A stretch of DNA of 64,000 nucleotides from Utricularia gibba (taxonomy: Eukaryota > Plantae > Magnoliophyta). The stretch spans positions 2,852,001 to 2,916,000 of the forward strand of contig NEEC01000004.1 of NCBI GenBank assembly GCA_002189035.1, written 5' to 3'. Shown here piece after piece: positions 7,265 to 62,999 of this stretch (position 1 is the stretch's first letter; each line of letters begins with the position of its first letter). The position numbers and the translations under genes were made by a program. Below the pieces are notes generated by a model that worked only from the letters and a program-made list of their open reading frames with translations, was not told where the DNA came from and did not search any database.

Positions 7265-8597
7265 TCAGCAAACAAATGAAGAATCAACGTAATCATCACT
7301 GCAATAGAGACCAGGTCGCTGACTGAAGCCTTGACTCTTCAGCAGCTCCCTTGCCTTGGTAACCAGCTCTTGGTTGCTCACTGCCCCATTCGATTCCGCA
7401 ATTATCCTCTGAATCGCATTACTCAGAGCCCCATAAGCTTCACCTCCAGATGGTTTAGCATCAGCTGATGTTTGATCAGATTGGCACCCACTGATCAGAA
7501 CCCCACAATCGGGTAATCCCCTTTTCGTGGCACCAGCATATGCTTCTTCCTTCTTCCCAACCGGCGTTTCCAATGCAGGTTTCACATAACCTCCATCGTT
7601 GTCTTCCAGTTTGCTCTGCAAAAACTGCATAGCTAATCCACCCCATCCCATCATCCCAACGCCACCACTTCCCTGACCACCACCATCTTGACCCTGTAGC
7701 TTACTGAAGATGAGGTTCATGAATTTCTTTACTTTAGGGCTCGCTTCGTCCCCGAATGCATCAAAGAGGGTAGGTCGCACATTGCCCACATCTATATCAT
7801 CTTTACCTGTTTTTTGCTTGAGTAGGTCGATTAGAGTTGATAGTGGGAGAGATTTATCCTTAATGTGGTACCCTTCTGGTTGGTGTTGTTCCTCGTAGTA
7901 TTCTTGTTGCTGGTGACGCCTGTGGTGATGGCTATGCCCCAGCTCCGGTGGAATGTGGACACCGCGAGATTCGATTGCGTCGGTGACGGTTTTACGAAGA
8001 AAGTTACCGAATCCGAAAGCGGATTCGCCACCTCCTCCATCCGATTGCTTCGTGCTGTGACCGATCTGCTCCTTGGCTTCATCGATCAGTCCTCCACTGT
8101 GACAAGAATCGGAAACAATCGTGATCTTGCACCCTTCCGGCACCTTCTCCACAAGATGTCTGAAATCGTCATCTGTGCAAAATGCCCAAATTCAGATAGG
8201 ACAATCTCCAATGCCCTAAATCTACAAATCAGGCAATATTTAAAGATTTACCGGTGATGAGATTCATGTCAGTGGGAACAATGCACTCATCGTAGCCTGT
8301 ATCATCATCCTCGCCGCTCTCCGCCGGGAGACGAGTGCCGTGTCCACTGTAGTGAACGAAGAGAAAATCTCCGGAGCGTGCGGATTCGACGAGATCAGCG
8401 AGAGCAGCGCGGATGTTCCGCCCGGTTGGCTGCGTGTAGGAGTCGTCGGTGTCGATGAGCACCTTGATGTCCTCCTCGGCGAATCCGTAGCGCTGGACGA
8501 GGCAATCGTGCATACGGCGGACGTCATTGATGCAGCCGCGGAGCTCGGCCTTGGTCCCCGGATAGTTGCAGCCGATGAGAACCGCCTTTCTCGCCAT
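7265..8597 (-). CDS. MC4: Type II metacaspase (AtMC4-like), 2 exons, 417 aa
   Basis: Exons 8597-8252 and 8172-7265; 79-bp GT-AG intron; 1254 nt. Begins [26 protein letters not shown]. Catalytic His (HYSGHG) and Cys (SDSCHSG), KDKSLPL autocleavage site, LISGCQ and QRPGLYCSD motifs. Symbol denotes the clade, not proven orthology. Confidence 0.97.
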
Positions 8598-9089
8598 CCG
8601 TTCCGACGAGCTCCGAGAGGAGTGTCGTCTGTAAAGTGGATGGTGGATATACCTTACGATTGATTGCGCCAACCGATAAGCTGTTAAAAACTGAACACTT
8701 TTTTGTGTTCTATTATTTTTTATTTTTCTAAAATAAAATATCTCATCATCCACACCGAAATATTTCTTCTGCTTCCATGACAAAGATATTCTTTTTTTAG
8801 GCTAATAAATTTGGCATAAATGCCATTCATTTTCAAAATTGAATACTCTTAAATGATGGGTGGATTTTGCTCTTCCTCCAATCGCCACCACACACGTCAA
8901 CACGCTTTAATAAAAAAAAGCCATAAATGTAGTCGATTCATTTTTTCTATACAAATATTATAAAAAAAACACAAATTGACCGTTTTTTTGTATAATTTAC
9001 GTAGATTATGATAGTGGGTGGTTATGATAGGTAAACATGTCTAAATGGGTTTTTTTTAATATGAAATTTAGTTTAAGAAAATAAAAGAG

Positions 9090-22266: not shown

Positions 22267-23223
22267 GGGCGCATTTGGTTGGGGGGTTTGGTCTAAACCC
22301 AGGTTTAGTTTATTTGGGTTTAAATAACCCGATTTCATGGGTTTAAAGGGTATAATCCGTGTTTGGTTGATGGGTTTAGATTATTTGGGTTTAAGATGAA
22401 TACACTTTTGGTACGTGGGTTTAAAATTAGGTTTGTGATGATTTTCATATGAAATTACCAATATACCTTTTAGTTAATTAAAATAAATTATCATATATTT
22501 TATTTTTCTATATCAATTTATAAGTTCAATCAAGCATCGCATAACATAAATTACGGTGCTTGGTTGAAACTTTATTTTATAACATAAGTTCAATCAATTT
22601 CACAGTAATAATAGACGCGGTGCTCGTCTTTAAAACGAAAATTTATATTTTACAGCAAGCACCGGATAATAATATACGCAGTGCTCGTCTTCAAAACGAA
22701 AACTCACATTCAGCACCAAAAATGAAAATCCACAATATTAGACATACTATTATTACTTTCATCTTTATTTTTTTCTTTGTCTTTATCTTTATTTTCTTCT
22801 TCTTCTTCTTCTTCCTCTTCCTCTTCTTCTTCTTCTTCATTTTCTTCTTCTTCCTTTTCTTCTTCTTATTCTTCTTCTTCAATAGATTTGAACAGATCTG
22901 AACAAATCTATTACAGATCTGAATAAATATGCTATAGATCTGTAGGAATTTTAACTTTCAAAAAAATTGGTAAACAGATCTGTGCATCTGGTTTCTGGCA
23001 AATCTGCATTCAAATGTGGTTCACGCAAGGGCAAAAGTGGAAGCGCCGAGGTGGGTTTAGCTAAACCGACCTCCCCCCTGGGTTTAGCTAAACCCAATTC
23101 CACGGGTTCCCACCCGGTTTATGATCATAAGGTGGGTTTATTACCTGAAACCCACAAACCAAACGTGGGTTTTTGTCTAAACCCACGCCGCAACCCACCT
23201 AAACCCAGCTACCAAACGCGCCC
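22267..23223. mobile_element. PIF/Harbinger (Tourist-like) non-autonomous element, 957 bp
   Basis: TIRs GGGCGCATTTGGTT ... TACCAAACGCGCCC; 3-bp TSD TTG on both sides; Copia sequence resumes on both flanks; ~200-240 bp terminal blocks shared with 56499-60817. Confidence 0.85.
22790..22880. repeat. (TTC)n microsatellite inside the MITE
   Basis: Imperfect TTC run; it explains the poly-Phe and poly-Lys ORFs. Confidence 0.9.
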
Positions 23224-24689: not shown

Positions 24690-25331
24690 AGAGGTACCTA
24701 ATCACTCATGATTGATAATGATGGATTTGATTAATTAAAAGTTAATTAATAAATCCATTATTATGACTTTGATTGAAAAAGCCTATAGGGTCACACACAA
24801 TAGTGGAGTTACTCATCGATATAAAATAGAATGACACAATTAAATGAGATGTAATTGGTAAAGTGGATAAATTAAATAGAGAGTTATTTTGAAATTAATA
24901 TTTATTAAACTCAAAATAAAGGATCTGATATAGATAAAATTTGGAACATATATATATCTCTACAAGATAAGATCTTTATAGAGATTTGATTTGATTTGAT
25001 AAGATCTTATATAGATAAGATCTACAGATCTACACACATCTTCGTTCTCTTTGAGATTGATCTGCAAGAGGGCGATTTTCTCTACTAGCACCTGAGGGGA
25101 TTGACCAGCATTCTGCTACCTTGAGAAGGTTATCAATGGAGTGCTTCATGTGTGGATACCATAGAGGTTGTCTGCTATTGGTGGTTGGTGAATAACAGAG
25201 TGCTCTGAAAGGTATTCGTAGTATCTCTTTATCTCACGTATACCGTATTCTAAAATCTGTGTTTGGGATTTCTCAAAAAATTTTAAATTATGCTGCACTG
25301 AGGACATAGGATGTCCACGAGAAACCAAACA
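24690..25331 (+). mobile_element. 3' part of an LTR (window family C, Copia Angela-like)
   Basis: Reverse-complement homology to 57182-57830; ends GAGAAACCAAACA. Confidence 0.75.
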
Positions 25332-26613: not shown

Positions 26614-26789
26614 GAGAGAGATTTTTGATAAACGAAAAATTATGCAACGTTGTTAAATTGTAATTTTACCTATCAAATTAATTTATAACCTAATACACAT
26701 TAAAACATAAAATCATAATATATATGAACAGGAAGTTTGTTCTTTCTTTTTCATTAGAAATGTGCGCTTGATCTACGGATCTAATGGAA

Positions 26790-27625
26790 ACACTCCCTGG
26801 CTAGAATGTTTGTAAAATGAGGATATCACAAATACGGATAGGCTGAGTTCCCTAAACTGTTTAGGCAATGGTTCTCACAATTGATGTTATGAGATTACTA
26901 AAACCTATGTGTGGGTGTCGATTAGATAATCGATTCACTGGATGACTCGTCTTCGAGATGCTACTATGGGAAGCTAACCAAGTATCAGTAGCACGATCTC
27001 GAATATGACAGCCGTGCAAGTAAGCTTAGACTTGAGGTCAACAAAGTTATCTTGATCTTAAGCTCACATTTTCACTCATTACTAATGGGAGCCTAACCAT
27101 GGCTTGCCTAGTATAGATGAGTAGGGATGTGACTCCTTAAGGTTGGAGATAGTTGATTGATCAATAAAGGATTCATCACTCATGTTAGCGATGAGATCAT
27201 ATCTCAAGTAATTGCATCAAAGACTAACAGTAAGTCCTGGGCCCAAGGTAATGACACTCGAATTGTTTGAGTAGGTCATTGAGTGTTAGTATTTGAATGC
27301 AATTATAAGTTCGATACATCAAAAAGACACACACCCATGTTTTGATATCGAATAGGATACAAGTATGATGAAAGCTATTGATTACATGGTGGTTGGTCAT
27401 AAAAAGGCTCAATCAGTTTAACTGATTATTCTTTAATCTTCTGCTATTGAAACCATAGAGACTGTCTGCTATTGGCGGTTGGTGAACAACGGTGTCATCT
27501 GAAAGGTATTTTGAACATCCCTTCGTTTGATGTATACCGTATTCCAAGATCTGCGTTTGGGGTTTCTCAAAAAATTTTAAATTCCGCTGCTTTTGAGACA
27601 TACGATGTCTACAAGAAAACCAACA
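26790..27625 (+). mobile_element. Internally deleted LTR (window family C)
   Basis: Reverse-complement homology to 57870-58500, then a jump to 57182-57350; ends AAACCAACA. Confidence 0.75.
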
Positions 27626-33892: not shown

Positions 33893-35814
33893 CTCCTACG
33901 GGAGTCAAAACACTCCATGTCTGTATTAGTCAACCCAGAAAATTCTGAAAGAGAACCTGGCGGATAAGAATACGAACCAAAATGTTAATTCTTAAACTTA
34001 CTTACATATAAAACCGATCCCAATGAAAACTTGGAACTTCAACAGGCGAAAAGCAAAGAACTCAAGAAAAAAAAAAAACACCCAGATTCCATATAAACTT
34101 GAATTGCTGAAACTGGTAAGAATTCAATTTCAATTCATAAACAATCTCAAAAAAAAAAAAACTTTCTTGGAACACATAAAACAAATGATTTAGACGATAC
34201 GCAGCAAATCAACAACTCCAGGAAACTCGTTAGGCTGCCTAAGCGAGAAAAATCAGCAACCATATCTTCTTTCAGCATACAGGGATCAAACCCTCTTCCA
34301 AAAACCGATAATCTTTGTTGCTAGATACATGAAAATCCATCGGCAGACACATACATGTAAGACAATGCGATTGCAAAATTGCGAGCGCAAAAAAGGAGAA
34401 CTTTAAATCAAATTTACAGAAAGTAGAACAATGGAATACGCACTGATTAACGGAGACAACTTGAGGTGCTCAAGATTGCAAAATGGGTACGCTGAGGAGT
34501 GTGGGTGGAATCTGAATTCCTTCCTTTTTCCTGCCAAACCAAACTTACAGGAAACCTTTAAAAAGCTTTCAAATGATTAGTCCCATGGAGTGACCATGAA
34601 AATGCGAATAATTGAGTATTAAATGAGACCAACTTTTTATTTAATTAAAAATGAATTAAATGGCTTGTTAACATTTTTGTCTTCTTTTCTTCAGTAAAGT
34701 TTGCTTCTAGATAATATGTAAAAATAAATGTATTTAATATGATAAAATCATTGTTTTGGAATTCACAATCCTTTTGTGGAGGGAGTGGTGTACGGTATCC
34801 CAAAGCGGTGGGTCCCACTGACAATTGAATAAAAAAACACACGCAGGACCTTCCTTTTTGAAGTACATTGAGTTGGGGTGGTTGTTTTTTATATTTGGCA
34901 TAAGATATTCTGGCAAATTACATATTTAGAAATGTCTTAAGTCCTTAAGAACAAGCAGAAATAAGAGCACCGAATTCTCTTTTGCACTCCAATTCTGACA
35001 AACCTTTGGGAAGATAGTTTATTTTTACTCATATTTTCATATAAATAATTATAATTATTATATTCTTTAAATAAATTTTAATTTTAATTTTCTTATCAAT
35101 CTATTTAAATTGTAATAATCATATGTGATTAATGATAAATATAAAAAAATATGTAAATTATTTATAAAAATACTTTTTATTTAATTGAAGTATAAACATA
35201 TTCAATTGTATAATAATAATAATTAGCAAGGAAATTATAAACATATGTCCATTATCTTTTTGGGGAAGAAGGCAAGGCATGATATTAACACGGAGCTGTG
35301 GAAATATTTTATTCTCATGCCAGATTTCGCAGGATGGGTGTTGATGTGCGGTAAGGGTTCTTAAGTTGATTGTGGTGGTGTAATGTAGTGTGTTTTTTGT
35401 CTGTATTGGGAGTGTTTGTTACCTGGATATAGGTGGAAATTAAGGTAAGTTTGCCAGTAAACCTGTATTTAGTATGTGAATTGCAGAGGGTTCTTTAGAA
35501 ATATAACTACTGTCCAAATTTAATTTTAGAAAAATACCTATTGTATGTAATTGAGTGATAAATTTACCAATTCTTCTTTTTTGTAAATTTTTGTTATCTT
35601 ATAAACAATAAAATTATTTTATTTTTATCATTTATCAATATACAAATAATGATTTACAATAATTAAAAAATATATGTTATAAAATATGTATATTAATGAA
35701 CAAAATAGATGTATCAATTGAAAATAAAAAAAATAGTATGGGCTCAATGAAAAAATGGATTTTCCATTAAACCGAGTGCATTTTTTTTTAGGTATTATTT
35801 GATATTATTTTTAA

Positions 35815-36185
35815 TTGAATATATATTTTTTATTTTAAATTTACATTATCACTCAAACCTTAGATATAATTTGAATTAATATTTTTTTATTTTAAATTTT
35901 TTTTATGAACACTCGATCCTTAACTACAATTTAGATTGAAATCATATTTTATATTTTAATTTTTATTAGTACTAAATCATCATATGCAATTTAGATTGAC
36001 AGCATATTTTTTATTTTAAATTTTTATCAATACTAAATCCATAGGTGCAATTTAGATTGAATATATATATATTTATTTTAAATTTTATTAACATTCGATC
36101 ATTAGATACAATTTGGATCAATTTCATATTTTTTATTTTAAAATTTATACTAATACCCGATACTTACATGCAATTGAGATTGAGA
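35815..36185. repeat. AT-rich minisatellite, ~60-bp unit x6
   Basis: Recurring CATATTTTTTATTTTAAATTT...CAATTTAGATTGA at ~60-bp period. Confidence 0.8.
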
Positions 36186-39693: not shown

Positions 39694-41630
39694 CTACCTC
39701 TTTTTCCCAGTCTCACTCTCTGATTCAATCGAATCTCTTACTTTGAAGCTTAACTCTTTCCTTATCTGCTGCCTCTTGTTTTCATGAACTCTGCTGGTTC
39801 CAGGTTCAGAAGTTATACTCTTGGGTTTGCTGGAGCCCACTTTCAGCAATTCTCTACTTCTCTCATGTTCATAGAAGAGAATTCGGATGACAGTTCGAAG
39901 TGGTAAGAGTTCGTTTCTTGCAGCATCAGCTCGTACTTCTTCCGACAGCTTTTGGCAATCTAAAATCCCACAGAGCTGCTTCTTATCAGCTTTGCTCAGG
40001 TCTGGATGCCCCTGTAACCCCATGAAGTGAAACTGGTTGGTACTTCACTCAAAATCAAACTGAAATTCATGTTTCAAACTGTTTTTACTCTTTAACCAAT
40101 TCGAAGAGAAAAAAAATTAAAAGAGAGCTAGAGAAGTGGTTGACAACATCTCTTGTGCTGTGAATGTAACAGATTACCTTGAGATAGATGTTTATTGCTT
40201 TGTAGAGATCATTATGTTGGGGCCTGGCTATTTCAGGTAATGTTTCAGCAAGAGATACCATTTGTTGAACCTGCAAATTATCTTCCTTCGCAACAGCTTG
40301 CAAATACAAATCTAGCAGCTTACCAATATTCACTAAGGTCTTCATTGATTCTTCTTCATCTCCAGTATTTTCTCTATTCCGCAAACTCAAGTAACTCTCC
40401 AAAACTTTCTGAACTAATTCAATCCCTTTGCCAGATTCGTTTACCAGCAGCAAATCTTCCAAAGTTGCCTCATCAAATTTTAATCCTGTAAGTCTCAAAA
40501 GTTTTTCTTTTGTCACAGGAGAAATTGCAAGTATGTTCGCAATCCGAAGGAGTCTTAGCAAAAATCTAGCTGAAACTGCACCTCTATCAGCAGGTAGAAG
40601 GCTAACAATGGTTTCAAGTACTGTTTTCTTATTTTTTTCCTCACGAGTTGAGCTACTTCCTGTTGGTACAATTTCTGGTATGAACAACCACCGTGTTGCA
40701 TAGACATGTAACGCCTCACCAATTAGCTGCTGTTGCAACTCACTTCTAGATTCAACAGCAGAAATGATCCATCTGAATGTTTCCTGGTCAAGAAAAGATA
40801 AGTCCTCTGTCCACCAGTCTTTTGGCACAGATCTTTGCACCTTTTTCTCATATCCTGATCTGGTGTATGTAAATGACCATGTGACCTGAGCGACAAAAAG
40901 CAGTTGTATGGCACTTAATCTCGAGAGGGACCTAAAAAAGAAAAAGATTTCTCTAACCTTGTTGGTGGGAGTCAAAATTTTGTCAGCAACTGACTCCAAA
41001 CATCTTCTTACAATCCCAAGATTTTCGGACCAATCCGCAACTCTAGGGGCCGTCTGTAAAGCAAGTATGGTATCCTTCCACCCCTGAAGAATGCAAGAGG
41101 AGAAGAACGAATCCAACTTGGACACAAGGCTTTCATTTTCTATTTCTTCAGTCATTTTTAGGAACCTTGCAGCACAATAGCAAGGTACAAAGTTTTGGGC
41201 ACTGAGATTGATTGTGATCCCATAGCAGAACTTGGCACATAGCTCAAATGCTTCTTCTCCACCTGGTATGTCATGCATCTCTATTCTGACATTTTCGGAG
41301 TCATCAGATTTGGCCAAAAGTTGCTTTAATAAGCCACATTTTGGAAGAAGAGCATGCTGTAACTAGGTAGTAAAGAAACCATTCTTCAGTTCTGGTTGAA
41401 AAAATTTATGTTTTCCTTTGTCAGAAACTGTACCTTGTGAAGAAGATAGTTGACATTGTTTATCTGAATGACTATATCGCTCGGAACATCGGCAGTCACA
41501 ATTCTAGGAGAACTGAAAAGGATTAGCTTGTACTACAGAATTTGAAATAAAACATGGTGTTCTTTTTTTACCTTGTGGCTTCAGCAGTTTGGAATGTGTC
41601 TGGCCTTGTTCCAAGTTTCATGAACTTCAT
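39694..41630 (-). CDS. BTB/POZ-NPH3 family protein (At5g47800-like), 5 exons, ~517 aa
   Basis: Exons 41630-41572, 41503-41434, 41356-40958, 40885-40178, 40011-39694; 1554 nt. MKFMKLGTRPDTF, DIPGGEEAFELCAKFCYG, VPKDWWTEDL, LYKAINIYLK and LDCQKLS..NELLPLRTV motifs. Confidence 0.93.
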
Positions 41631-43194
41631 TTTCAACAGCCAGAAGCTCAAAACTTGAAACAGATCAAATATAAACACTTCAATAATGCCTCCAACAATA
41701 AACTTCCAAGCATAAAGAAGTGGCTTTTCGCCTAGATTCTTCCCAGCCAATTCCAGAATACGCTGTCAATGGTAATTACGCAATCCGGAAAGGCACCATC
41801 ATGTCAGCGGTAAGTGATCTGCTGCAGATGAAAATGTTGGCCTCTGTGATTCCTGGCAACTTTAGAATCTCAGTCAAAAAAAGGATGATCCTTTCTGAAA
41901 ATATCGATATGATGGTTGTGTTAAAACAAACCTAACAACAGATTGAAAAATAAGCATGTGGTTACTGAATATGAAAAAGCGGCTTGCTTTTGATATTCAG
42001 CAAAAGAGGTGAATCAAAGCCGCTGCACACTTTCAACATCGCTCACCATTCTCCTTTGAAATCATATAAACCATAAAGCAGCTCACTGATGTCAGTTGCA
42101 GCTTTAAGATAACACAAAGATTTGGGACAAGCCGCTGAAGCAGCAGCTTGGTCCAGAGCAGAGCCTCTAAGATGTGAAAACCAGCCCCTACAAATCACAG
42201 AAGGTGACATACAGAAGATCTGAGAGAAGGAAGCTAATGATTGTAACCTGGAAATGGGAAGAGGCAGACAAGCGTCAGTTGCTTTCATTGAAGAAAAATT
42301 CAGAGAATGATTACTTTATGGGCAAATGCTGATATTGGCATCACCCACTCTGTTAATGGTAGTGGGAGAAAGGCGGGCCTATTGCAGTTGCAAATGCTGG
42401 AAAAAGTTTCATGATATGGGGACCATATGCAGAGATCGTGTTAACAAGTGATTTTGATTCTAGTCCTTGTTGCCTCTCACCTCCGCTGAGTATGACACTG
42501 GGGTTCTTTTCCGGTTGGCCTCTGCTGTACTGTGAAAGCAGCATCTCATCCAAAACCTAGACTTGATACAAAGTTTACAAATCTGATTTTGTAAACTTCA
42601 TTCACAAATGAATCAAGTAAACATTCTTATTCTGTAGAGCAAACATCAGATTTGATGAAGGTTGCCCAAACACTCTTAAGTCCATTTTGCTACCAACCAC
42701 AATCATCTTTCAGCTGCAAATCACAATTAGCAAGGAGTTTTAGGATGACGGAGTGATTAAAAAAAAGTTGGTCACATGATGATGATTGGTGTAAAATGAT
42801 ATCATTCAAACAAAACTGTTATCATAAAAATTATAAATTTATAGTATTATTATCAAGTTGACACCATTAAAAAATAAAAATTTTATTAGAAAAACGTAAA
42901 TTACGCTACTCAATAGGAAATCCTAGGTAGGTCACTGGTTTAGGGCTTATGCGCACTGATTATGTTGGGATGCACCCATGTGGCATGTTGTCCTTACAGC
43001 TATTGCAAGATAAACCGTAGATGTCTCCATCACTTACACACACATTAGAAAATGGTATAAATCACTGGGGATGAGACAGGTTGGTTGAAGTGGGAACAGT
43101 TGCATTTCCAAAACGTATTTATTTGAAATGTCCTGAGCAGCACAGCATTCATTTCTCATTCAAGCTAACTCGAAAGCCATACCGGAGTAAATTG

Positions 43195-44338
43195 GAATTT
43201 ACTTTGCAAAGTAACTAAATTTACTACAACATTTGCAAAGTAACTAAGTTTTCAAAAAACATTTGTAACTAATATTATATTAGAATTAATTATCAATGTT
43301 ATTTTTATGAATTATTAAATCATTTCAAAATTTAAAAATACTCATTTGTGTACGAAAATTTTAATTTAATCTTAAAATAAATAAGTAAAATATTTTTGAT
43401 ATATAATAAAAATATGTAAACTAAACAAATAATGCATATTTACGTAGAATATTTGAAATTATTACTAAATTTTATTAATTTTTTTAAAACTAAATAAATA
43501 ATATAAAAAATAATACTCACACTCAATTATAATTACATAATCATAACGAATGCATTTCATTTGGACATTGAATAATCCAAAGTACCTGAAAAATGATTAC
43601 TAAATTATTTTAATGGTTTTTGGATAATTCTCAAATATTATTATAAAAAAATCACACTTGATGGTAATTAAAATATAAAGTTGAGTGCCAATAATGTATA
43701 CATGCATATGTATAAGTAACTTAGTTAATTTGCAAATACCATTTTGAAAGTCAATTAGTTCACAAATGTTAAACCAAACTCGGTTATTTTGCAAATAATT
43801 TTTACTTACATTAGTTATTTCATCAATTTTCCTGACACTCAACTTCATGTTTTAATTACCATCAAGTGTGATTTTTTTATAATAATATTTGAGAATTATC
43901 CAAAAAACCGTTAAAATAATTTAGTAGTCATTTTTCAGGTACTTTGAATTATTCAAGTGTCCAAATGAAGTGCATTCATTATGATTATATAATTATAATT
44001 GAGTGTGAGTATTATTTTTTATATTATTTATTTAGTTTCAAAAAATCATTATAGAATTTAGTAATAATCTCAAGTATTCTACTTAAATAGGCATTATTTT
44101 TTTAGTTTATATATTTTTTTATATATATCAAAATATTTTTTTTTATTTATTCTAAGAGTAATTTAAAATTTTCGTACACAATAATAGTATTTTTAAATTT
44201 TGAAATGATTTAATAATTCATAAAAATAATATTGATAATTAATTGTTGTATCATATTAATTATGTTACAAATGTTTTTTGAAAACTTAGTTACTTTGCAA
44301 ATGCTGAAATAAAATTAGTTACTTTGCGAAGTAAATTA
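43195..44338. mobile_element. Long inverted repeat (foldback, probable Mutator-like MITE): ~490-bp arms, ~145-bp spacer
   Basis: The left arm (AATTTACTTTGCAAAGTAACTAA...GTTGAGTG, 43195-43687) is the near-perfect reverse complement of 43834-44338. No clean 9-bp TSD found. Confidence 0.85.
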
Positions 44339-45082
44339 CACTGGCACAGCTATTTTGCCAATTTAGCCAGAAATACCGTGTCAAATGAGACGCCAAAGGA
44401 CAAACGGTGCAACTTTTTTTTTTTCTTTATCCTGACAAACCGTAAGGTAGACACAGGATATGTTCAAAATGCTCTTCATCTGCCGTGCCCTGATTCTATC
44501 ACATGAGTCACGACTTCTTTTATTCCATCCTTACCGTGAATCAGTTTCAAAAAAGGCAATGGCGTTAGGAGCTGCTTGTTCATAGAATTCTGGAAGCAGG
44601 CAGTCAAGTTGTTTTTTTTTTTTTCGTTTTTGTCAATCAGTACTCGTGGCTGCTAGTTTCCCTCCCATGTGATCCCTGTCACCTCCTTTGCGGAAAGGCC
44701 GCTTCTACCAACTGTCCTTACGGATTATCTACCAGCGCAGCGCAGCACTTGCGGCACAAAGAGATGCACATAAACTAGCAGACTGACAAGTAGTCTTCAC
44801 TCCTGTTTTTCTTTTAATGACTACTTGGATCAGATTGAACTAACCTTCAAATGATTGAGGACGCATGTGTGACATGTGATTTCCCCTCCTAAGGATCAAG
44901 CATCTCTAGTCAATGGCAGCTGCATCCAACTTTGTGTTGCTTCTGAATGTTTGCCAACGCAGGGATATTTTTTATTGTGTTCTCTATTTGTGTAATGGAA
45001 TGAGCATTGCATTTCCAGTGAGCCTTGGTCATGTCGAGAAAACGAGCCAGCGAAGGAACAGGAACGATACAGAAGATGATCT

Positions 45083-48000
45083 TTACGTTCGTGGTTTGCC
45101 GTCTCGATATTCTTCTTGCAGGGAGGATAACATGGCCTTCAGGCGTCTCTCGAAATTCAATCTGATGTTCGTTGTTATTCTTTTGTTATGTTTGGTGTGC
45201 CTCAACCACGCAACTCCAATGGAAACTTGAACGTTGCAGACTCCCGGTTTTGATGTCGAATCCTCGACACGATACCTTACGTGCACCTGAAACTCATTCA
45301 TCCAAGTTGTCAGTGGCTGGCAACGAAGAGAATGAGGAGGAGAAAGGGGAGAGCATACGTTGAAGTAGTCCCAAAATGGGACATCATGGAGCGTAATGAC
45401 CTCGTCTAGGAGCCAGCCGTTTCCGGCCATGAGACGGGACTTCTGCTGAATGCTTGTAACTTCTCCCCTGTAAGGGGAGACTGGCCTGTCAAACTTGTAA
45501 TACAGTTGCCTCTGTTGCACTTGTTGTGGCTTCTCTGCTTCCCAAGGGGTGTGTGAATAGTTCAAGCCTCCTGCTCTCTCCATGCACTGGTGATCGATTT
45601 TGCCTCCATTAAACAACTCCATGAAGAAACTTGTCTACAACACAAGACAGTTACCTCCTCAGCAGAAATACAAGACTCATTCAACGTGGACGACCGAAAG
45701 ATGGTACTCACCGGAAGCGGAAGAGCCGACGAATAGATAACTGACATTTTAACATCCTTGGATCCAACAGAGGGAATGCTCCCCTCAGAATGAAGAGCAC
45801 TGGGCTCAGAAAGGTCACCAGATGATGCTGCTGCATCCGCAGCATTTGTTTCGTGTTCATCCGGCTCAGCTTGTTGCTCTGCAATATTTGCTTTCTGTGC
45901 AGGGGCCAAGGATCTCGCCCTCCACAGTGCCATGATGGTCCGGTGTGCGACATTGAAGGACACGAAAGAATGGAAGTGATACTCCAACCGGCAGTCGGAA
46001 TCCAAGCACTTGGCTCCGTGGAGACTATCAAGTCCACGCCCTGGCCTCAAGGTCATGACAATAATTGGACTGCCGATCGACGACAAAGTCGGGGATGTCA
46101 CGCTTATGTCTTCTATATCTTCCCAGAGAAAGAAGAACTTGGTTTTGTTGCCAAACAGATCTCCATGGAATCCGATAACTCTTGCGGACAGATACATACG
46201 CCCCTGTTACCAGCTGAAAAGATGAGTTACTATGTCTAAAAGATAGCTTTCCAAATAAGCACAACTGCACGAGTTAGTGTTGTACCCTGAGAGGCATTTT
46301 TCTCTTCAAGTGACACACGAAGTCATTCACGAGAAGCTCTTCAGAGGGGAGCCCAAAAAGCTTCTGGAACGCTGAATTAGTTTGAGGGGACCGCAGCTTG
46401 ATCTGAGCAAGTTTTAAACAAGTTACTTATGTGAAGCAGAACTCGAAAGCCGAAATAGCAGCATACTACCTTTTTTCCAACCTCCTTCTCCATCTTAGAT
46501 ATGAAGTCCTTGTACACTGTTGGACCCATGTTATTGTTCAAGAAAACTCTCAAATGTAACTTGGATTGGCATGCCTGAGCCAAGTTACCCTCCAGAGGAA
46601 TCCAGATATCCGAAAGTCCAGAAATGTTCGATCGCAAGAAGTTTATTTCAGCAGATCCAAGAGATGTAGCCTCACCGAAAGGGCCATCGAATTCAAAAAC
46701 TTCAACAATAAGAACAGAGGGAGGCTCCTCCATGGCATCAAACTCAAATATTTCTGCAAGAGGGCAACTAACTATCAGAGAAAAGCCTTTCTTTTGTTTT
46801 CCCAACATGAAACACAGAAGAAGATGGGAAGGATTGCAAATACCATTCCATACAGGATCAGATTTCTGAAATTTTACTGAACTAGTCCTTGTTTTCCCTT
46901 TGCATGTAAAAACAACGTAAGGATCAGAGAATCGTCTTGCGTTCACTGCCGCCAAGCTGTTTCCTTCAATCAAGGCTACTGTCAACAACCATCCATCGCC
47001 CTGTGCTTTGACACCATGATCGCCACCTATAACCATCATAGTAAAAAGCAAATAACAAATTCATATTTGCTTAGTGCGTTAGATACATCTTGTGATATTG
47101 GAATAAACAGTTCTATCTCAGTGTTAGAGACCATGCTTGAGTAAGGTGATTCAAGCTAATCCCTGACTCAGAAGTCGTGGGAAATTTTATGAAGCAGGCA
47201 GTGAACTTACTCCTTCCTCTAGTGGATTAACTCAAGCTCGAGAGCATGAAACAAAGGTGATAACTTCAACGTCTTAGATCAAGTTTTATATATTGAAAGA
47301 AGCAGGATAACTTATCACTGCAGGCATGTTATCCACTTGAATACCTTTTTGAGACCGGGCCTGCATAAAGCGAGACAATAGCTCCAGGAATCTCTTCCCT
47401 TGAAGAAACAGCAAACCGCTTATAAAAAATTCCCCAAGAGAATCGGGAAGGTCCAAACCACCAAACTCAAGACCATGAATTGTACTAGGCATAGCCAGGC
47501 ATATATGCATTAGTACATATAAGCCGACCAAAATGGTGAATAGTACAGGAAAATTTGCAAAATATTGAACTGCTAATTTCCAAACAGACTGTCTTTCCAT
47601 CGGAACTGATCCCAAAACTTGATCCTTCTCCATATTCTCAAGATCAAGTGGCTCTACCTTTCGAGATAGCAGACTCTTGTACTGGTCAAAGCTTTCTTTT
47701 ATACCTTGTTTTGTTCCACCTTCAATCATACTCTTCATAATGGAGCTCTGTAAAAAGTTAACTCGCCATGAAACTTCTAGTCGTGAAGAGATATCTTCAG
47801 ATGGGAGCTCAGGCCCCGGAGTTATGCAGTAAAGCACTTCAACCTTGAATGTTTTTCCATATGGAGCATCTGGAGTTGTCACGGTCGATAATATAGCAAA
47901 AGCCTTCCCATCCACTTTGAGATACGCTTGCTCCTCTGTAGTTTTGAGTGCTTTAATCAGTTTACTTGGAGCTTTAGTATACGAAACCACTCTCTTCAAG

Positions 48001-49466
48001 ATCTCACCATTATTTTCAAATTTCCATTGTCCTATCTGGAGATCTGATGATCCTTCAATCTCCGCAAGTGAGTTCAAGAAACCCGAATCGGATGAAAAAA
48101 GTAGCAAGTTCAACTTTTTAGGTGCCAAACCATACAATTGGTTGATAACTATGCCTCCAGATAAAGCAGCTGGCACTTCTACCCCTCGATCTTTCATCTC
48201 CATATTTTTCAGAAGTTCCTGAAAATCAGATGTTGAAGGATTTTTCTCTTCGGAGCCCTGCTTCCCATCTACCACACCCACGGTTTCAGGTAAATCACAG
48301 GCATTACTAGCTACTACATAGCTTGCAGAAGATGCATCCACATTCTTATTAAAAAGTTGAGCAACCCTATTAGCTAGAGTTGGCAAGTAGGGCTTTTCCT
48401 CCTCGGGCGAGAACATTTCTTCCGCTCTTGAAAGAGAGAGGTCTGTAGGAGATGAAGGCGCTGTCAGTGAATCCACTTGTATCCGGCCATGCATCCCAGG
48501 TACTAGTATGCAACGATCAGCAGGATTCGTCAAGTCAGTCAATGTGTTACTTTGCAGAAAACAAATTGCCAGGCGGATTTCACCTAATCAATGCACAAGC
48601 AAACCAGAGCCACCTCATGTTCCTTGAATGATTAACATCTATTACTCAACAAGCAACATAAACTATGTAGCACATACTTCAATCAGACAGTGGAATGGAG
48701 TAAATGCTCTAGCCAGTAAGCAGGAAATTAGCTACAAAAACGGTATGAAGTATTAAAACCTAACAGCAGCATTGAAGGAATCATCTTTATACAGAGGGAA
48801 CAAAATCAAGCATTGTAAAGCGAATCAAATACTTGGAAGTGTTCTACAATGCTTTCTGGAAAAAGCCTTCTCCTAAGTCCAATTCCGCAGTATCAAAATC
48901 ATAGCACACTGAAATAGCACAAGTACAATTGAGCTTTTAGACCTAAAAATCCGCAACTCTCTGAGAGACCGTCCAAAAAAGAGGTACCATTTATAAGAAG
49001 TGACGTTCTAAAATTCTTTAATATTTCTTAAATCTTTTGCATCTATTTACCATTTAATTAGATTTAAAAATTAACAAAGGTGCAACATCATCGTTATGAA
49101 AACGCAGATGAAAGTGATACCACAGTCCTTGTTCTTGGACTTGCTGCTTTTTGGCTGCAAAATATACCAATTAGTACCAAGAGATTTGTCTGTAGCCTCA
49201 AGAACTTGATAAACGGGCACTTTTATCTTGCCAGCAAAATCGTGATGATACTTGTCTTCATCAAGAACAGATATGCGAAGCTCTTCCTCAACGCTATCAA
49301 CTTTAAAAACGAACTCTTCACACCAAGATGGATTCAAACACTTCTTTGTAACCTTGGTTTTGAACTTTTGCCTTCCTAATTGCAGCTTTACATACGGATT
49401 ACAGAACCCATTTGTGTCAACGGCGGGTAACTTTCTTGCTTCGATCACGCGAACAAAAAGTTTCAT
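45083..49466 (-). CDS. C2 and GRAM domain protein (C2-VASt-TM-C2-GRAM-VASt, At1g03370-like), 8 exons, ~1046 aa
   Basis: Exons 49466-49121, 48583-47345, 47026-46844, 46753-46470, 46402-46286, 46203-45712, 45634-45359, 45286-45083; 3141 nt with consistent phases. Motifs MKLFVRVIEARKLP, APYGKTFKVEVLYCI, DHGVKAQGDGWLLTVALIEG, RSPQTNSAFQKLFGLP and FHSFVSFNVAHRTIMALW. Confidence 0.95.
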
Positions 49467-54703: not shown

Positions 54704-57181
54704 CTACTGGTAGCTTTTTGTGGTGCAATATTCATAGTGAATCCAAACACTAGTTTAGCAAATCACCGGAAACCATGAAACGTGGTGTTAAGGTGAACAT
54801 ATTGTCCATCTAAGTTCTACCTAGTACTAGAAACGTGTTAACCAATGCTTGGTTGAGGTTTCATTGCTCTTTCATTAAACCAAGCATCAAGTCACCCTCC
54901 ATCTAGTGCTTTTACTTGATTCATACAATGTTCATGTAACAAATCCACTACAAGGTATAATAAGGTACCCTTGTAATGAGATAGTAATCTATCTAGCCAA
55001 CTCATGAAAACGCATATTGTCATTTATGGAATGCAATAGCACTGTAATGAGATACAAATGTATGCATAATAAGACATTGTCACCTAGCGGCATTGTGAGT
55101 TGTGACCGAATCTTTATACATTACTTTAACTAGCTCATCTCATCAATTATTCCATGCTTGGTTGGAGCCGAAAAAAAGGTACACTTGTCATCTATGTTAA
55201 TGCTATGTTCGATTTCATTTTGGAAGTCCAAGAGCACCTCATCCTCTAAGGAATTGACAATCATCTTCTTCCAAATGAGGTTGTGGAGCAATGTACATAT
55301 TAATATTATTTGACTCAGCATACTTATGGAATAGTATCTAGTAGATTGAAGTATACCCCATCATATCTTCATTAATCTCCATGCTTGTTCGATCATATTT
55401 CTGATTGATGCATGACAAATGTTGAAGAGCTCTTTGGGATTTTGAGGTACTTGGCTTCTTTGTTCTTGATCCTTCAAGTGATAATGCACACATTGGTATG
55501 ACGTCAAGAATACTTCCTTGTTAACATATCCATTATCGCATAAACAGAAGGTCCCTCTATCATCAAATGTGATGTTAAACCATTAAACCAAATAATGACA
55601 ATCACATGAGGCCAAACACGTTGAATACTTGAGCATGTGCAAAGCCGTGTTACCTTGAAAGTGCATCTTTTAACGTTAGGATGTTTGTTCCACATTACTT
55701 AAATTCAACAAACATAGATATAAATTTCATCTTCTCATTACACACTAAGAAAATTGATGACACACATTTTTTCCTAAATTTCAAACTGCAAAATGGTTAT
55801 ATTTTATTATGGTTTAGGTTAGATAAAGGTGATTTTTCATGCTTTAGTGGTGTTTATGTTAATACTATGTGATTATGTTGAAAAGTGGACTAAATCGTTT
55901 GATTTAGTCCACAACTCTTGTTACTGATGTTTCAGTAAGTTTAGCAGGGAGATGAGCCGAAAATCAGACTTGCAAGCGTGTAAAACAAGCGAAAAGGGGC
56001 GCAAAATCCGAAGAAGGACAAAGGGCATTTTTCTGCTGCCACCGCAGTCTGCAAGTTCAGGCCAAGAGCTGTACTGGCGGTCAGAAACAATATTGGCAGT
56101 CAGGAACAGTGCAATGGAGTGAAGCAAAAGGGAAAAATTATTTTCGAAGAGGAGAGCGGGAAGTTTGAAAAAAAGATAGCAGGGGGGTGCAAGGGGTCTT
56201 CTTCCCCAACGAGAAAAACACAAACCAGAAGGGGGAAGGAAAGCCTTCATCACCAAGAGTAGCACCGGAGCCGAGTCCAGCGCTGCTGTTCCGAGCGGTG
56301 AACAGTAGCTAACGGGCGGAAGAACAATCTTTATATACTTTCCATTTTCTGAACATTTAGAGTTTTTGCATTTGACTTGTTTACAATGTTTCTGCCATTT
56401 TGGTCAACTTACATGAATGAAATCGTGTTTTATTTCCCAAGCATGAGTGGCTAGAGTCTTAGGGATGCCTTAAGGTGAAGTGGTGTGGTGTGTGCTTAGG
56501 GCATGTTTGGTTGCTGGGTTTGGCCTAAACCTAGGTTTAGTTTATTTGGGTTTAGGAAACCCGGTTTTGTGGGTTTAGTTTCTGTAAATCATGTTTGGTT
56601 GATGGATTTACATTATTTGAGTTTAAATGAACCCACGTTTGGTAGGTGGGTATAAAATTGGGTTTATACACAATTTTCATGGGAATTTACCAATATAGCC
56701 TTTCATACTCATCCACCGGCTTTCACACCGACTTTACCCATTCATACATATTCCTCTTGATTACCATTACCCCATTCGTCCACCGATTTTCACAGTTGGT
56801 TGTTGCGGTGCTGCCAGTCGACGAGATCTCTCGTTTTCACAAGTAATTGAGAGTGAAGAGCCATGGGTTAAGTCCAGTTTGTATACTCTCTTAGTTGTGC
56901 AGAGTTTCTCGTTTGAAATCCGTTGAATTTTGAGTGAATTTTACGGTTTACTTGTCGTAGTGTTCGGTGTAGGTGCTTTTTTCTTACTGTTTTCTTTCCT
57001 CCATCACAGATTGCAGGTATGCATAGCCCAAACGTGGTGGAAGAGTCTCACAAAAAAACGAAATGCGCCTAGAAGCCGGATTGCCCTCTGGACTCGGATA
57101 GCACTGGACACGATATTAACTTCTCGTATGCTGACACACCTTGTGACCCAACTGGTTGTGCTGTAGAGGGTGTGAACATCA

Positions 57182-58682
57182 TGTTGGGTTTCTCGTAGAC
57201 ATCGTATGTCTCAAAAGCAGCGGAATTTTAAAATTTTGAGAAACCCCCAACGTAGATCTTGGAATACGGTATACATAAGACTAAGGGATGCTGAAATACC
57301 TTTCAGATGACTCCGTTGTTCACCAACCGACAATAGGAGACGGCCTCTATGGTATCCACACGTGGAGCACTCCGTCGATAACCTTCTCAAGGCTCTTGAA
57401 TGCTGGTCGATTTTCTCAGGTGCTAGTAGAGAAAAACGCCTCCTTGTGGATTAGTCTCTAAGAGCACGAAGACCCTTGGAGCATCTATTCAAGATCTAAA
57501 TCTTTTAATAGATATATGGTAACATATCAAATCATATCTTCGTAAAGATCTTATCTTGTGGAGATATGTATATGTTCCAAATCTTATCTATATATGATCT
57601 TTTATTTTGAGTTTAATCAATATTAATCTCAAAATAACTCTCAATTTAATTTATCCACTTTACCAATTACATCTCATGTAATTGTGTACTTCTATTTTAT
57701 ATCGTTGAGTGACTCCACTATTGTGTGTGACCCTATAGGCTTCTTCAATCAAGGCCGTAATAATGGATTTATTAATTAACTCTTAATTAATCAAATCCAT
57801 CATTATCGATCATGAGTGATGTCTAGCAACATATCATGATCCCCAAGATGTAAGAATAATCAGGTGAATTGATTGAGCCTTTCCATGACCAGCCACCATG
57901 CAATGAACAGCTTTCATCATACTTATATTTCATTTGATACCAAAACATGGGTGTGTGTCTTTCTGATGTATCGAACTTATAATTGCATTCAAGCACTAAC
58001 ACTCAATGACCTACTCAAACAATTCGAGTGTCATTACCCTGGGCCCAGGACTTACTATTAGGCTTTGATGCAATTACTTGAGATATGATCTCATCGCTAA
58101 CATGAGTGATGAATCCTTTATTAATCAATCAACTATCTCCAACCTTAAGGAGTCACATCCCTACTCATCCATACTAGGCAAGCCATGGTTAGACTCCCAT
58201 TAGTAATGAGCGAAAATGTGAGCTTAAGATCAAGATAACTTTATTGACCTCAAGTCTAAGCTTAATTACACGGCTGTCATATTCGAGATCTTGCCACTGA
58301 CACTTGGTTAGTTTCCCATAGTAGCATCTCGAAGATGAGTCATCCAGTGAATCGATTCTCTAATCGACACCCACACATAGGTTCTAGTAATCTCATTACA
58401 TCAATTGTGAGAACCATTGCCTAAACAATTTAGGAAACTCAATGTGTGCCAGCTTATCCGTATTTGTGATATCTTCATTTCACAAATACTCTAGTTAGGG
58501 AGTTTTTAACTTGATCATGAGTGCTTGAAGAATCTCACATTATGATCTCATCATAATTTCTATAGCACATAGATCAAGTAGAGGATTTTATCAATGATAT
58601 AAATTTGATCACAATTCAAAGTAAATATCATAAGATAAGATTTGCCAATGAGTTGATTGTCTCTAGAACACATACACTAACA
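57182..58682 (-). mobile_element. Solo LTR (window family C, Copia Angela-like), 1501 bp
   Basis: Termini TGTT...AACA; perfect TSD CATCA at 57177-57181 and 58683-58687. Lineage name is from recalled LTR start sequence only. Confidence 0.92.
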
Positions 58683-59511
58683 CATCACGCCTAGTAGGGA
58701 CTCCGAATCACACAATAGCATCGACTCGTCGCGGTGGATTGGACGAAGCGGCAGGGGACCGAGGGGATTCAATGATGATGTGCAGTTTATCACAGAAATG
58801 AAAGAGTTTAACCTGCGCACATGCAAAGAGCTACGTCACTTGGGATTAACAGTGGTGCAGCAAGCGCGGGAGTTGGTGGATAATCAGCGTCAGGCAGGGG
58901 ACGAGTAGTTCCAACCCTGCGAGGTTGCGCTATTTCCTTGTCTCTAGGGACTGTGAAAGAGAGCTTATTGTGCGTGGTTTAGTATCCGAACGTAGATCTT
59001 AAATCTGTTGTATGGTGCTCCGCCTTATGTTGGACTCATGGACTAGGTGTATTTCATCTTCTAATCATCCTTTAAACTAATATGAGCACTGCAAAGGATA
59101 GACAGTGTTCTGACTTTGTATGTGGAAGCACCGTGTATGAACAATTGCGGTGCTTCGTTGTTGAGCACTCTTCCGCAAACACCGTATTGCAACTATCGTC
59201 ACATTCAGAGCGGTGCTATCGAGTAGTGATGGACTAGCACCGCGTTGGTGTTGCATATTACGAAGCACCACGTCTAGACACAAGGTTTCAAATCCAGTGG
59301 TGGCACCGGATGTTACAACATGCGGTGCCACCGTGATCAGTGATCGATTAAAAACTAACAAGGTCAGCATACGATAGTTCACGCGAGATCCATATAGTAA
59401 GATTCATATGACAAAAAGTGAAGACATTCCCGCTGCAAAAAGTTAAAAAGAAAAACAAATTACAGCTCTGATCACCTTACGTTCATCATTACATGAAGTT
59501 CAAAGATCTAC

Positions 59512-60439
59512 CTTCAAAAGGATATTTAAATTTGTGTCATAGGCCAAGAATATAGAATTGGAATCCTCAACTTGAGAATCATTGAATCTATCAATTTTAT
59601 TGGGTATCCTACCACCTGAAAACGGCGCAAGATCCCGAAGTAAAATATACATAAAACCTAGAAAGTGCATTAGCATATTAAAAAATATTCTTACTGCCTC
59701 AATAGTGCCAAAAGCAAAAAAAAATCTTGCATCCATCATTCTCCATTGTCATTTGACACATTAAAGGGAGCAAAAAGGATACACAAGAGAGATTGCTGTC
59801 AAACACAAAGAAAAAATTAAGCTTGGCTACTCAAACTGTCAAGGAAAAAACTACTGGACTGTTGCAGGTCTAACTTTAACTCATCCTACCCCTGAAGCGT
59901 CAACATATAACCAAGAAGTTCTTCAACCTTCTCTTTGCATGCAAGGGGTGCTTCAGCAAGATAACTGAAACCAAAGTCCTACAACATTTAAAAAAAATAA
60001 TGTCTATCATAAAGCCTTCCTACAAATGAAATTACTACCTAATATGATGCAAAAACATAAAAAAAAATTCATAAATTTAGTATGATAAAGCATTTACAAA
60101 TAAAAAAAAAACTACTAATTAGTAGAGATGGGAGAAAGAAATCACCTCCCAGCTATCCTTACACAGCCTAAAAGGTCATCCCCTTTTCTCCTTTTATGGG
60201 CCTGCGGAAAAACAAAATCAGCAACACAGCTCACATATGAACTAGAGAATGAGATGGCGTGTTCCACAATGAGGATCTTACCTTTGCATCTAGCAAATAA
60301 TCAAGGACAGCACTGATTGTCTCATCTAGCGCAGAAATGATCTTTGTGAAAGTGCTTTCACTAATAACGTCAATTAACCCAGAATCTGCTATATCTTCTT
60401 TAGTTCTTCTGATGGTTGCTAGTGGAGTTGTTGGGTGTT
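59512..60439 (-). pseudogene. Captured neurochondrin-family gene fragment (5 exons with introns) inside the PIF element
   Basis: Exons ~60439-60282 (ESTFTKIISALDETISAVLDYLLDAK), 60201-60146 (AHKRRKGDDLLGCVRIAG), 59964-59875 (YLAEAPLACKEKVEELLGYMLTLQG*DE), 59795-59695 (SFLLPLMCQMTMENDGCK), 59615-59512 (IKLID..NSIFLAYDTNLNILLK). GT-AG introns; order matches the C-terminal third of plant neurochondrin (At4g32050, from memory). Confidence 0.85.
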
Positions 60440-62999
60440 CTTGGAAGCCCAGACCCATTCACTTGTTTGAAACACAATTTCTAGAAAATGGGGTAGCTGC
60501 ATACTTACCGAAAGACCCACCCTCTTGCGCTCAAAGAACAGGCGACGCCACTGGAAAAGCACGAATGAATTCTGGGTTGTAGACCTGCGTTCAAATGCAG
60601 TTCACGCGAGGGCAAAAGTGGAAGTGCCGAGCTGGGTTTAGCTAAACCGACCCCCCCTCCCCTCCTGGGTTTAGCTAAACCCAGCTCCACAGGTTCCCGC
60701 CTGGTTTATAGTCAATAGGTGGGTTTATTTTTACCCACCTGAAACCCACGAACCAAACGTGGGTTTATGACCAAACCCACGCCGCAACCCACCTAAACCC
60801 AGCAACCAAACGCGGCCATAGGGTTGTAGATGAAATTTACGTGTATTCCTTAACTCTTGTTTCTAACAAACCATGGGTAGACCTAAGGAGGGAAACAAGT
60901 AGTTTCACAATTTAGATGATTGGTTTAGAGGTAGACCAACAAACCAAGACGTGAGCAGTCGGTGTTAGTCCAGGGTAGAATCAGTAGAACCGGGTAGACC
61001 TAGTTCTATATGCCTTGCATGTGGGTAGACCTAATTGCAACGTTGGTTATGATATTGAAGACTAGCTTAGCCGAAAATATGGTGAATAACCTGGGTAGAC
61101 TTAGGTTATTTGAAGTTGTGAGTGTAGGAAGAAAGTAAAATAAGTTAGGAACCTTAGCATTACACCACCTACAGATCCTTAAAGCATCTTCGTATTAGTC
61201 TGAGTCAAAACCAGTACCTGGTACCTTAGCATCAAGACCTGATATTGCTTACCTACCTTGTTTGTTGAACTTGTTTACCACTGTTAGTCCGAGTTTAGAC
61301 TAAGGCCTACTGTTATCCGAAATTATGCATGTATTAAAACACTTAGCAAGCACAAGCTCTTCGTGATCGACCCCGATATCCACTATACAAGTTTTCCAAA
61401 TTTGTATTTTGTGTAGATTAGGGATTATAAATTTATTTGATACGGATTTTCTATTTTTATTTGCAATGATATTAGGAAATTTCCGTTTATCAAAAATATT
61501 TATTGATATCACACATTTTCAATTTCTATTCTTTGTACTTTTAGATACCTTTATTTCTATATTGATGTATTTATCATATGTGGCCCTAGCACAATTATAC
61601 ACATATATAATGAACATTAGCCACATTATCAAAATCATTTATAAAAATTCTAATTCTTGGAAGTATTTGAATCTTCCATAGATGTAGACTCACCAACAAC
61701 TATTAGTGTCTCTAATAAGACATTGTGGTATCACATGCATCACATGTTGGAAGTACTACGAAAAAGTCTTGGTGCTTCTCTTAGCAAAATTCTGTTGCAC
61801 TATCAATTTTTTATGTTAGACATAGAATTCCCAAAAATATGCAATCCTGGCATCATGACATATCTCCTAGTTCTCAAATCCTAATAATTTTTCAAGAGAC
61901 ATGATATATCAAAAATATTTATGCTAATTTTCAAGTTCTCTATTGATACCTTATTCATATCACTAATCAACTTACTATATATTTCACTTATTTAGGAAAC
62001 TTATATGTGAGAGAATACTTGCATTCCACCCTATACCCCGCATGGTAATATTTTGAATACAAGTATATTAACACAAGCTAATGCTTGTCTTTTATAATTT
62101 CCAGCAAATTTTAAGCATGCAAGTAAAGTTTCTTATTTTAAGAATGGTGTTGTAGTATTTATCTCATCCTATCCCATTTACCACATGTTATGAAAAAAGT
62201 TTCATTCATACATGGACCATGATCAATGTTAGTAATTAATTTTAAGGTGATAATACTTTTTCATCATTGCCATATTTTTTACTTAAACTTTTTTATTTTG
62301 GGGGTGTTGCCTATTGTCAATTTGAAATTTATCTAAAATAAATAAAATGAAATCAAAAGACACATTAATACAGATATTTATATTTCTTAAAAAAATATCT
62401 AATCACTTAATCTAACGTCTATACTTATCATTAAGTATAATAAAAATAAATAAATTATGAGATATTGATATTCTATGGATAGAGACTAATCATTCCTATT
62501 TTATAGGTTTGGATCATGGTCTATTCGTGTGAGATCTTGTCTTATGGGTAGAGTGAAAAAAAGGATATGGTTATGAAGATTATATATTTCTCCCAAAATG
62601 TGGCCATCTTTTGAGAAGGCTCTGAAATCAGGCCTAGCCAAAAAATAAGCCCATCCCCACTGAAGCTAAACATGATATGTCCACGGATTTCTAAGCTGCA
62701 ACAGTCGAAAACTGTGAAGGCCTTTTGGGAATTGTCTAGAACTTTTGTCTATGGGAGATAGTCTGCGTTTAACATATCCCTTTCACTCGTGTACTGTGAT
62801 TTACACCTCCTTCGTTTTTCTCCTTTGCATATGCTAATTTTGGTGAGTTATGGTATTCCCATTATTGTGAGGTGCTTGTGAACATTGCTCTTACACATAA
62901 TTCATTTCAAGGTTTTTGTTGATGAATTCGATGTTAGTTAGAAAATCAGTGTTTGTTTATTGCGCTAAATTTTCGTTCATTCAAGAGTTGTGCTAAATT

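Follow-up and report, generated by a model that had tools for sequence, protein, structure and literature searches.

Pack-MULEs of rice and other plants carry intron-containing gene fragments with a decayed reading frame, and each cargo is present at low copy number. For the PIF/Harbinger transposons the closest described elements are the Pack-PIFs, a kind of Pack-TYPE transposon known in maize and rice (Gisby and Catoni 2022, PMC8903248) and defined by the PIF cores GGCCTCGTTTG (rice) and GGGCCCGTTTG (maize) given in Tab C of S1 Table of that work. Elements of the maize Pack-PIF cluster #18 have an average length of 535 bp and hold a 163-bp gene piece, and according to the capture model of the same authors two neighbouring insertions are mobilised as one (PMC8903248).

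Here we analysed a window of 64 kb (64,000 nucleotides) of Utricularia gibba DNA, in which positions 56499-60817 probably represent one non-autonomous PIF/Harbinger "Pack-PIF" with a genomic neurochondrin fragment inside. PIF/Harbinger gene capture, considered much less documented in the original prediction, does have a precedent in the Pack-PIF elements of maize and rice (PMC8903248). The element is like these in being non-autonomous, in its terminal repeats with the GGSC..GTTTG core, in its putative, imperfect 3-bp target duplication, in the host gene DNA between its ends and in an interior less repeated than the termini. Compared with maize cluster #18, the cargo amounts to 1.1 kb and comprises five whole exons and five introns, and a nested solo LTR is present too. 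Tourist MITEs have the same terminal sequences and a 3-bp target duplication, as is putative here, whereas this element, with 2.8 kb without its solo LTR and with host gene DNA, is too large for a miniature element. With the Pack-MULEs it has in common DNA-level capture with introns, a decayed frame and a low-copy cargo; it differs from them in its putative 3-bp duplication and short Tourist-type ends, where Pack-MULEs are generally known to have 9-11-bp duplications and long Mutator repeats. The element is thus an ordinary though well-preserved gene capture of an already described kind, which stands out only by its large multi-exon cargo and its well-mapped borders. As a clean multi-exon PIF/Harbinger capture with both breakpoints mapped (the right one within a few bases), it could provide a test case for the pick-up of DNA by such transposons.

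Results and discussion

Contigs of four public runs with the same species label (X1 and X6, DNA; X8 and X10, RNA) were aligned to positions 55700-61500 of the window. The features deduced from the sequence and from these contigs are collected in Table 1.

Table 1. Predicted features of the putative Pack-PIF and of its sister element (positions in the 64-kb window; strand given where assigned).
Feature	Position	Strand	Basis
Left flanking triplet TTA, putative target-site duplication copy	56496-56498		Sequence; empty-site contigs hold a single TTA, then GGG
Left terminal inverted repeat, start GGGCATGTTTGGTTGCTGGGTTT	56499-56523	+	About 21 of 25 bases equal the reverse complement of the right end
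Left terminal block, common to the sister element	56499-56703	+	80-81% identity to 22274-22470
Internal non-coding backbone, left part	56704-57176		Depth about 220-290 (X1), 1500-1900 (X6)
Nested solo LTR, 1501 bp, TG...CA, 5-bp duplication CATCA at 57177-57181 and 58683-58687	57182-58682		Sequence and contigs
Internal non-coding backbone, right part	58688-59393		Depth about 215-255 (X1), 1360-2060 (X6)
Exact 12-mer AGTTCACGCGAG, possible templated-repair trace	59376-59387	+	Again at 60599-60610 in the right block
Cargo: low-copy neurochondrin gene fragment with introns, 1107 bp	59394-60500	-	Depth drop; mRNA contigs match only inside
Neurochondrin exon F, first 39 nt only, ends at capture breakpoint	59394-59432	-	RNA piece 59394-59432; no GT after
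Neurochondrin exon E, 1 nt short relative to mRNA	59512-59615	-	RNA piece 59512-59615
Neurochondrin exon D, extra T in T-run 59716-59724	59695-59795	-	RNA piece 59717-59795; Pfam positions 428-449, E 0.015
Neurochondrin exon C, in-frame TAG at 59886-59888	59875-59964	-	RNA piece 59878-59964; Pfam positions 382-405, E 0.026
Neurochondrin exon B	60146-60201	-	RNA contig piece 60146-60200 and joints; GT-AG borders
Neurochondrin exon A	60282-60384	-	RNA contig piece 60281-60387; Pfam PF05536 positions 336-362, E 0.0097
Stretch 5' of exon A: parental intron or second captured piece	60389-60500	-	X8 record 23; two X6 DNA contigs
Right subterminal block; 60585-60817 common to the sister element	60501-60817	+	85-90% identity to 23004-23223
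Right terminal repeat, ending GCGGCC	60793-60817	+	Minus-strand reading GGCCGCGTTTGGTTGCTGGGTTT from 60817
Right flanking triplet ATA, putative target duplication copy, one mismatch to TTA	60818-60820		Sequence
Cargo-free sister element, 957 bp, TIRs GGGCGCATTTGGTT and GGGCGCGTTTGGTA, perfect 3-bp duplication TTG	22267-23223	+	Shared terminal blocks

Carrier element

The carrier has a length of 4319 bp, or 2813 bp without its solo LTR, and a PIF-type TIR core (GGSCNNGTTTG) was found at both of its ends. The core of the right TIR, GGCCGCGTTTG, is one mismatch away from the rice PIF core and that of the left TIR, GGGCATGTTTG, two mismatches from the core of maize PIFa. The triplets flanking the two ends (TTA on the left, ATA on the right) match in two of three bases, the PIF/Harbinger duplication being 3 bp long and typically TTA or TAA. 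Outside the shared terminal blocks, the internal 530 bp of the sister element are unrelated to the backbone of the large element. No transposase was detected in the five backbone ORFs scanned (at least 35 aa, right part of the backbone at 58688-59393), which gave no Pfam match at E ≤0.01; the ORFs in 56499-57181 are at most 78 aa long. On the sequence features, the assignment of 56499-60817 to a putative non-autonomous PIF/Harbinger (Tourist-like) transposon is supported. As had been predicted, the cargo (59394-60500) lies wholly between the TIRs of this element (56499-60817) and adjoins its right terminal block.

Several DNA contigs pass over the element altogether, joining position 56496 to 60819 (two contigs of X1) or 56498 to 60822 (two contigs of X6) and skipping 4322-4323 nt; a skip of 4322 nt corresponds to the element plus 3 nt and leaves one TTA. 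Furthermore, in ten X6 contigs position 56501 is followed directly by a variant of the right flank, and the left flank is present in an X1 contig at 60822. Since the summed word depth of both element flanks reaches hundreds to thousands, the joining contigs stem from further copies of the host repeat, without the element, and the precise joins across 56499-60817 indicate that the element and its triplet are a single insertion into TTA.

These joins bear on the possibility that two independent Tourist insertions came to flank neurochondrin sequence already resident here, be it a pseudogene or the gene proper, for which one could cite the different flanking triplets (TTA and ATA) and a cargo that adjoins only one terminal block. 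We regard this as extremely improbable, as the paralogous host-repeat contigs link the outer flanks precisely and with one TTA, the sixth exon is cut without a donor site, the mRNA sequence next to it is missing from the 64 kb, and both flanks are high-copy repeat and not genic DNA. Two separate insertions around a resident pseudogene had been named beforehand as one finding that would overturn the capture, and the paralogous contigs that join precisely across the element are taken to rule them out.

The host of the element (55700-56498 and 60818-61500) is itself a high-copy repeat. To the right of the element, many loose contig ends occur at 61130, 61399 and 61442 and hint at additional borders of nested repeats.

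Identity of the captured fragment

The translations of exons A, C and D each gave the Neurochondrin family PF05536 as their sole Pfam match, in the order of the profile (605 positions; Table 1). Each match scored 13-15 bits against a gathering score of 22. As three peptides chose the same one of 24,736 families, and in profile order, chance is negligible despite the sub-gathering scores. Two RNA contigs, X10 record 10 (2081 nt) and X8 record 22 (1592 nt), each align to the window in six collinear blocks with GT-AG joints (60387-60281, 60200-60146, 59964-59878, 59795-59717, 59615-59512 and 59432-59394). The cargo differs from these mRNA contigs by 17 substitutions in 471 nt (about 96.4% identity), with 2-4 differences per piece. 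Beyond the cargo the mRNA contigs run on for more than 250 nt, both past 60387 and below 59394, and are unlike the window there; even when as many as three mismatches were tolerated, the 30-nt mRNA continuations at both cargo ends were absent from the 64-kb window. Judged by the Pfam fragment matches and the mRNA contigs, the cargo is part of a neurochondrin gene, and by the same sequence comparisons the window copy is a fragment and not the whole gene. The neurochondrin match proposed at the outset is thus upheld by three ordered PF05536 matches and a spliced mRNA contig of about 2.1 kb at about 96% identity.

Broader searches added no relatives. When exon A was compared by phmmer with 1.84 billion representatives, the only matches were three spurious ones, to RCC1 or repeat proteins, and none was a plant neurochondrin; a search for homologous proteins with the 75-aa ORF, whose length window leaves out full-length relatives, returned nothing. 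No matches came from metagenome scans, whether for the peptide of exon A or for a DNA pattern of the right block, the ESM Atlas gave only HTH matches at chance level for exon A, and plasmid BLAST gave no match, as expected.

Three DNA contigs (X1 record 7 and X6 records 17 and 18) are 95-98% alike to the cargo and span introns as well as exons. As the introns are retained in the window and spanned by DNA contigs, the copy was derived from genomic DNA and not from mRNA. The DNA-level capture put forward in the original prediction agrees with the presence of introns, with the divergence of the mRNA at both cargo ends, one of them inside an exon, and with the absence of the neighbouring exons from the 64 kb.

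Exon and intron structure

Between 59394 and 60384, RNA contigs and sequence together define five complete neurochondrin exons and the first 39 nt of another, all on the minus strand. The introns between exons A and F measure 80, 181, 79, 79 and 79 nt, and all five have GT-AG borders. The ordered exons with GT-AG introns are therefore as first described; of the count of five, the five whole exons stand, and a truncated sixth exists below 59512. The start of exon A had been set at 60439, a position that did not hold: its acceptor lies near 60384, and the open frame upstream of it is intron-like sequence. At the other end, the minus-strand sequence that follows below 59394 is ATGGATC and offers no donor site, which places the breakpoint within the sixth exon or right at its border.

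The stretch 5' of exon A can be read in two ways. An RNA contig (X8 record 23, 363 nt) matches the window at about 97% over 60389-60500 only (112 nt) and is unlike it on both sides. The match is bordered by the right end of the cargo and by a site 4 nt upstream of where the acceptor of exon A lies. In two X6 DNA contigs, 60389-60500 seems to be covered jointly with exon A. This part is either parental intron that has undergone a small deletion by the acceptor or a second captured piece.

Decay of the window copy

No intact reading frame was found in the fragment, which holds about 165 of about 600 codons and is interrupted by a TAG and by +1 and -1 indels. In the spliced frame the TAG (59888-59886, exon C) falls within a motif that otherwise reads ...LQG-DE...; the parental codon at this site is inferred to be GAG, as the mRNA contig spans the site and the position is not among the differences listed. 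The T-run of exon D contains nine T against eight in the mRNA, and the contig has 21 letters between its aligned pieces where the window has 22. Exon E, with a single gap, measures 104 nt in the window and 105 nt in the mRNA contig. In the spliced sequence, about 30 nt separate the +1 indel (exon D) from the -1 indel (exon E), and a TGA falls between them. The stop and small frameshifts reported earlier were thus found in part: the TAG, one extra T and one missing nucleotide are present, but the B/C junction is in frame with the acceptor at 59965/59964. Among the RNA contigs of the public runs aligned to 55700-61500, none was at least 99% alike to the window copy. Transcription of this copy, siRNAs against the parental gene and a general transduplication of host genes by the family, the last two suggested in the original prediction, thus find no support here. 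The cargo is a dead piece of a gene without demonstrated function, and for annotation a neurochondrin-like gene model at this place corresponds to a pseudogene fragment.

This decay also argues against an assembly chimera of transposon sequence and neurochondrin gene: a difference of about 4% from the parent mRNA, together with a stop and indels of its own, points to a distinct old locus and not to the mis-joining of a live gene, and X1 contains 54% of the sampled exact words of 59400-60900. Among the contigs listed, none bridges 59393/59394 or 60500/60501 independently, and the window variants at 59706 and 59711 are in none of the contigs listed there, as a chimera would have it; on balance, such an artefact seems most improbable to us.

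Copy number and nested solo LTR

The backbone is far more abundant than what it carries. Over the bins 56670-57057, 58804-59385 and 60550-60743 the depth is about 160-290 in X1 and 1290-2060 in X6, the right block having about 160 (X1) and 1290 (X6). Over the cargo the depth is 6-37 (X1) and 50-87 (X6), so that the backbone is 20-30 times more abundant, and the low-copy part ends near 60500. This contrast indicates a many-copy backbone family and a cargo present in few copies, the parent being counted among them.

The two parts of the backbone are separated by the solo LTR and are contiguous in other copies, in which 58688-59393 continues from 57080-57178 (X8 record 21). Contigs of both DNA and RNA runs skip 1506 nt at the solo LTR, and dozens of loose ends occur at 57182 and 58682. 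The solo LTR was inserted after the element was in place. Its family is very high-copy, with a summed word depth of up to about 30,000 in X6, and inverted, fragmented relatives of the LTR are found 30 kb upstream at 24701-25331 and 26788-27625.

Route of capture

In the reading that we favour, a backbone of this family would earlier have gained about 1.1 kb of neurochondrin genomic DNA, comprising five whole exons, as many introns and the beginning of exon F, most likely through error-prone double-strand break repair with template switching. The cargo-bearing element would then have sat in, or jumped into, a TTA site within another high-copy repeat, and may have been mobile after the capture. 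Later, a retrotransposon would have been inserted in the element and collapsed to the solo LTR, and the cargo would since have decayed, acquiring a stop codon, a 1-nt indel at each of two places and substitutions amounting to about 4%.

The exact 12-mer AGTTCACGCGAG ends 6 nt left of the cargo and recurs in the right block. Chance alone would produce a pair of this kind in about one of ten comparable regions, but where it lies is suggestive of templated filler. The capture model for the maize and rice elements (PMC8903248) finds no support at this locus, as there are no vestigial internal terminal repeats beside the cargo. Their absence and the duplicated 12-mer favour a repair-based capture over the fusion of two neighbouring insertions. 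The composite of two neighbouring insertions was rejected because no TIR-like motif (up to 3 mismatches in 14) was present in 56513-60750 and the backbone beside the cargo had no homology to the terminal blocks. A nested carrier of the MULE, hAT or Helitron type is likewise unlikely, since no collinear inverted repeats or target duplication surround 59394-60500 and the two weak inverted pairs found there are wrongly ordered.

Repair could also have taken place at this very locus. The cargo might have entered an already immobile element by local break repair with filler DNA, and the element would then never have transposed as a Pack element. The 12-nt word near the left junction and in the right block resembles such templated filler, the depth of the cargo corresponds to only a few copies, and a 62-nt probe over the left junction of backbone and cargo, of which only three words were sampled, listed no public run. 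Two different X6 DNA contigs span the cargo introns besides the window version, which suggests more than a parent and one copy and weighs against a capture confined to this place; we consider the latter rather unlikely. Among the contig joints listed, no cargo-free family member was contiguous across the capture site.

For the favoured Pack-PIF capture, a further consequence could be imagined, namely that the cargo-bearing element is still mobilisable, resides at several loci and yields transcripts (readthrough from the neighbouring repeat, or antisense) feeding 21-24-nt siRNAs that dampen the parental neurochondrin. We give this very little credence. If true, such dampening would parallel, for a PIF/Harbinger element, the regulation that certain Pack-MULEs have been proposed to exert.

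Other features of the window

Elsewhere in the window, Pfam matches mark a metacaspase-like gene with Peptidase_C14 in two exon ORFs (7268-8783, minus strand), an NPH3-family gene (40088-41317, minus strand) and a C2-GRAM-VASt gene distributed over several exon ORFs (45086-49466, minus strand). With these ordinary host genes, the window is genic and not pure repeat. An AT-rich tandem array at 35809-36146 consists of five to six copies of units of about 60-61 bp with 61-78% identity. Moreover, a near-perfect palindrome of about 1.15 kb occupies 43193-44340, with its centre near 43760 and inverted-repeat arms of 85-95% identity, and could represent a foldback element or give rise to hairpin RNA.
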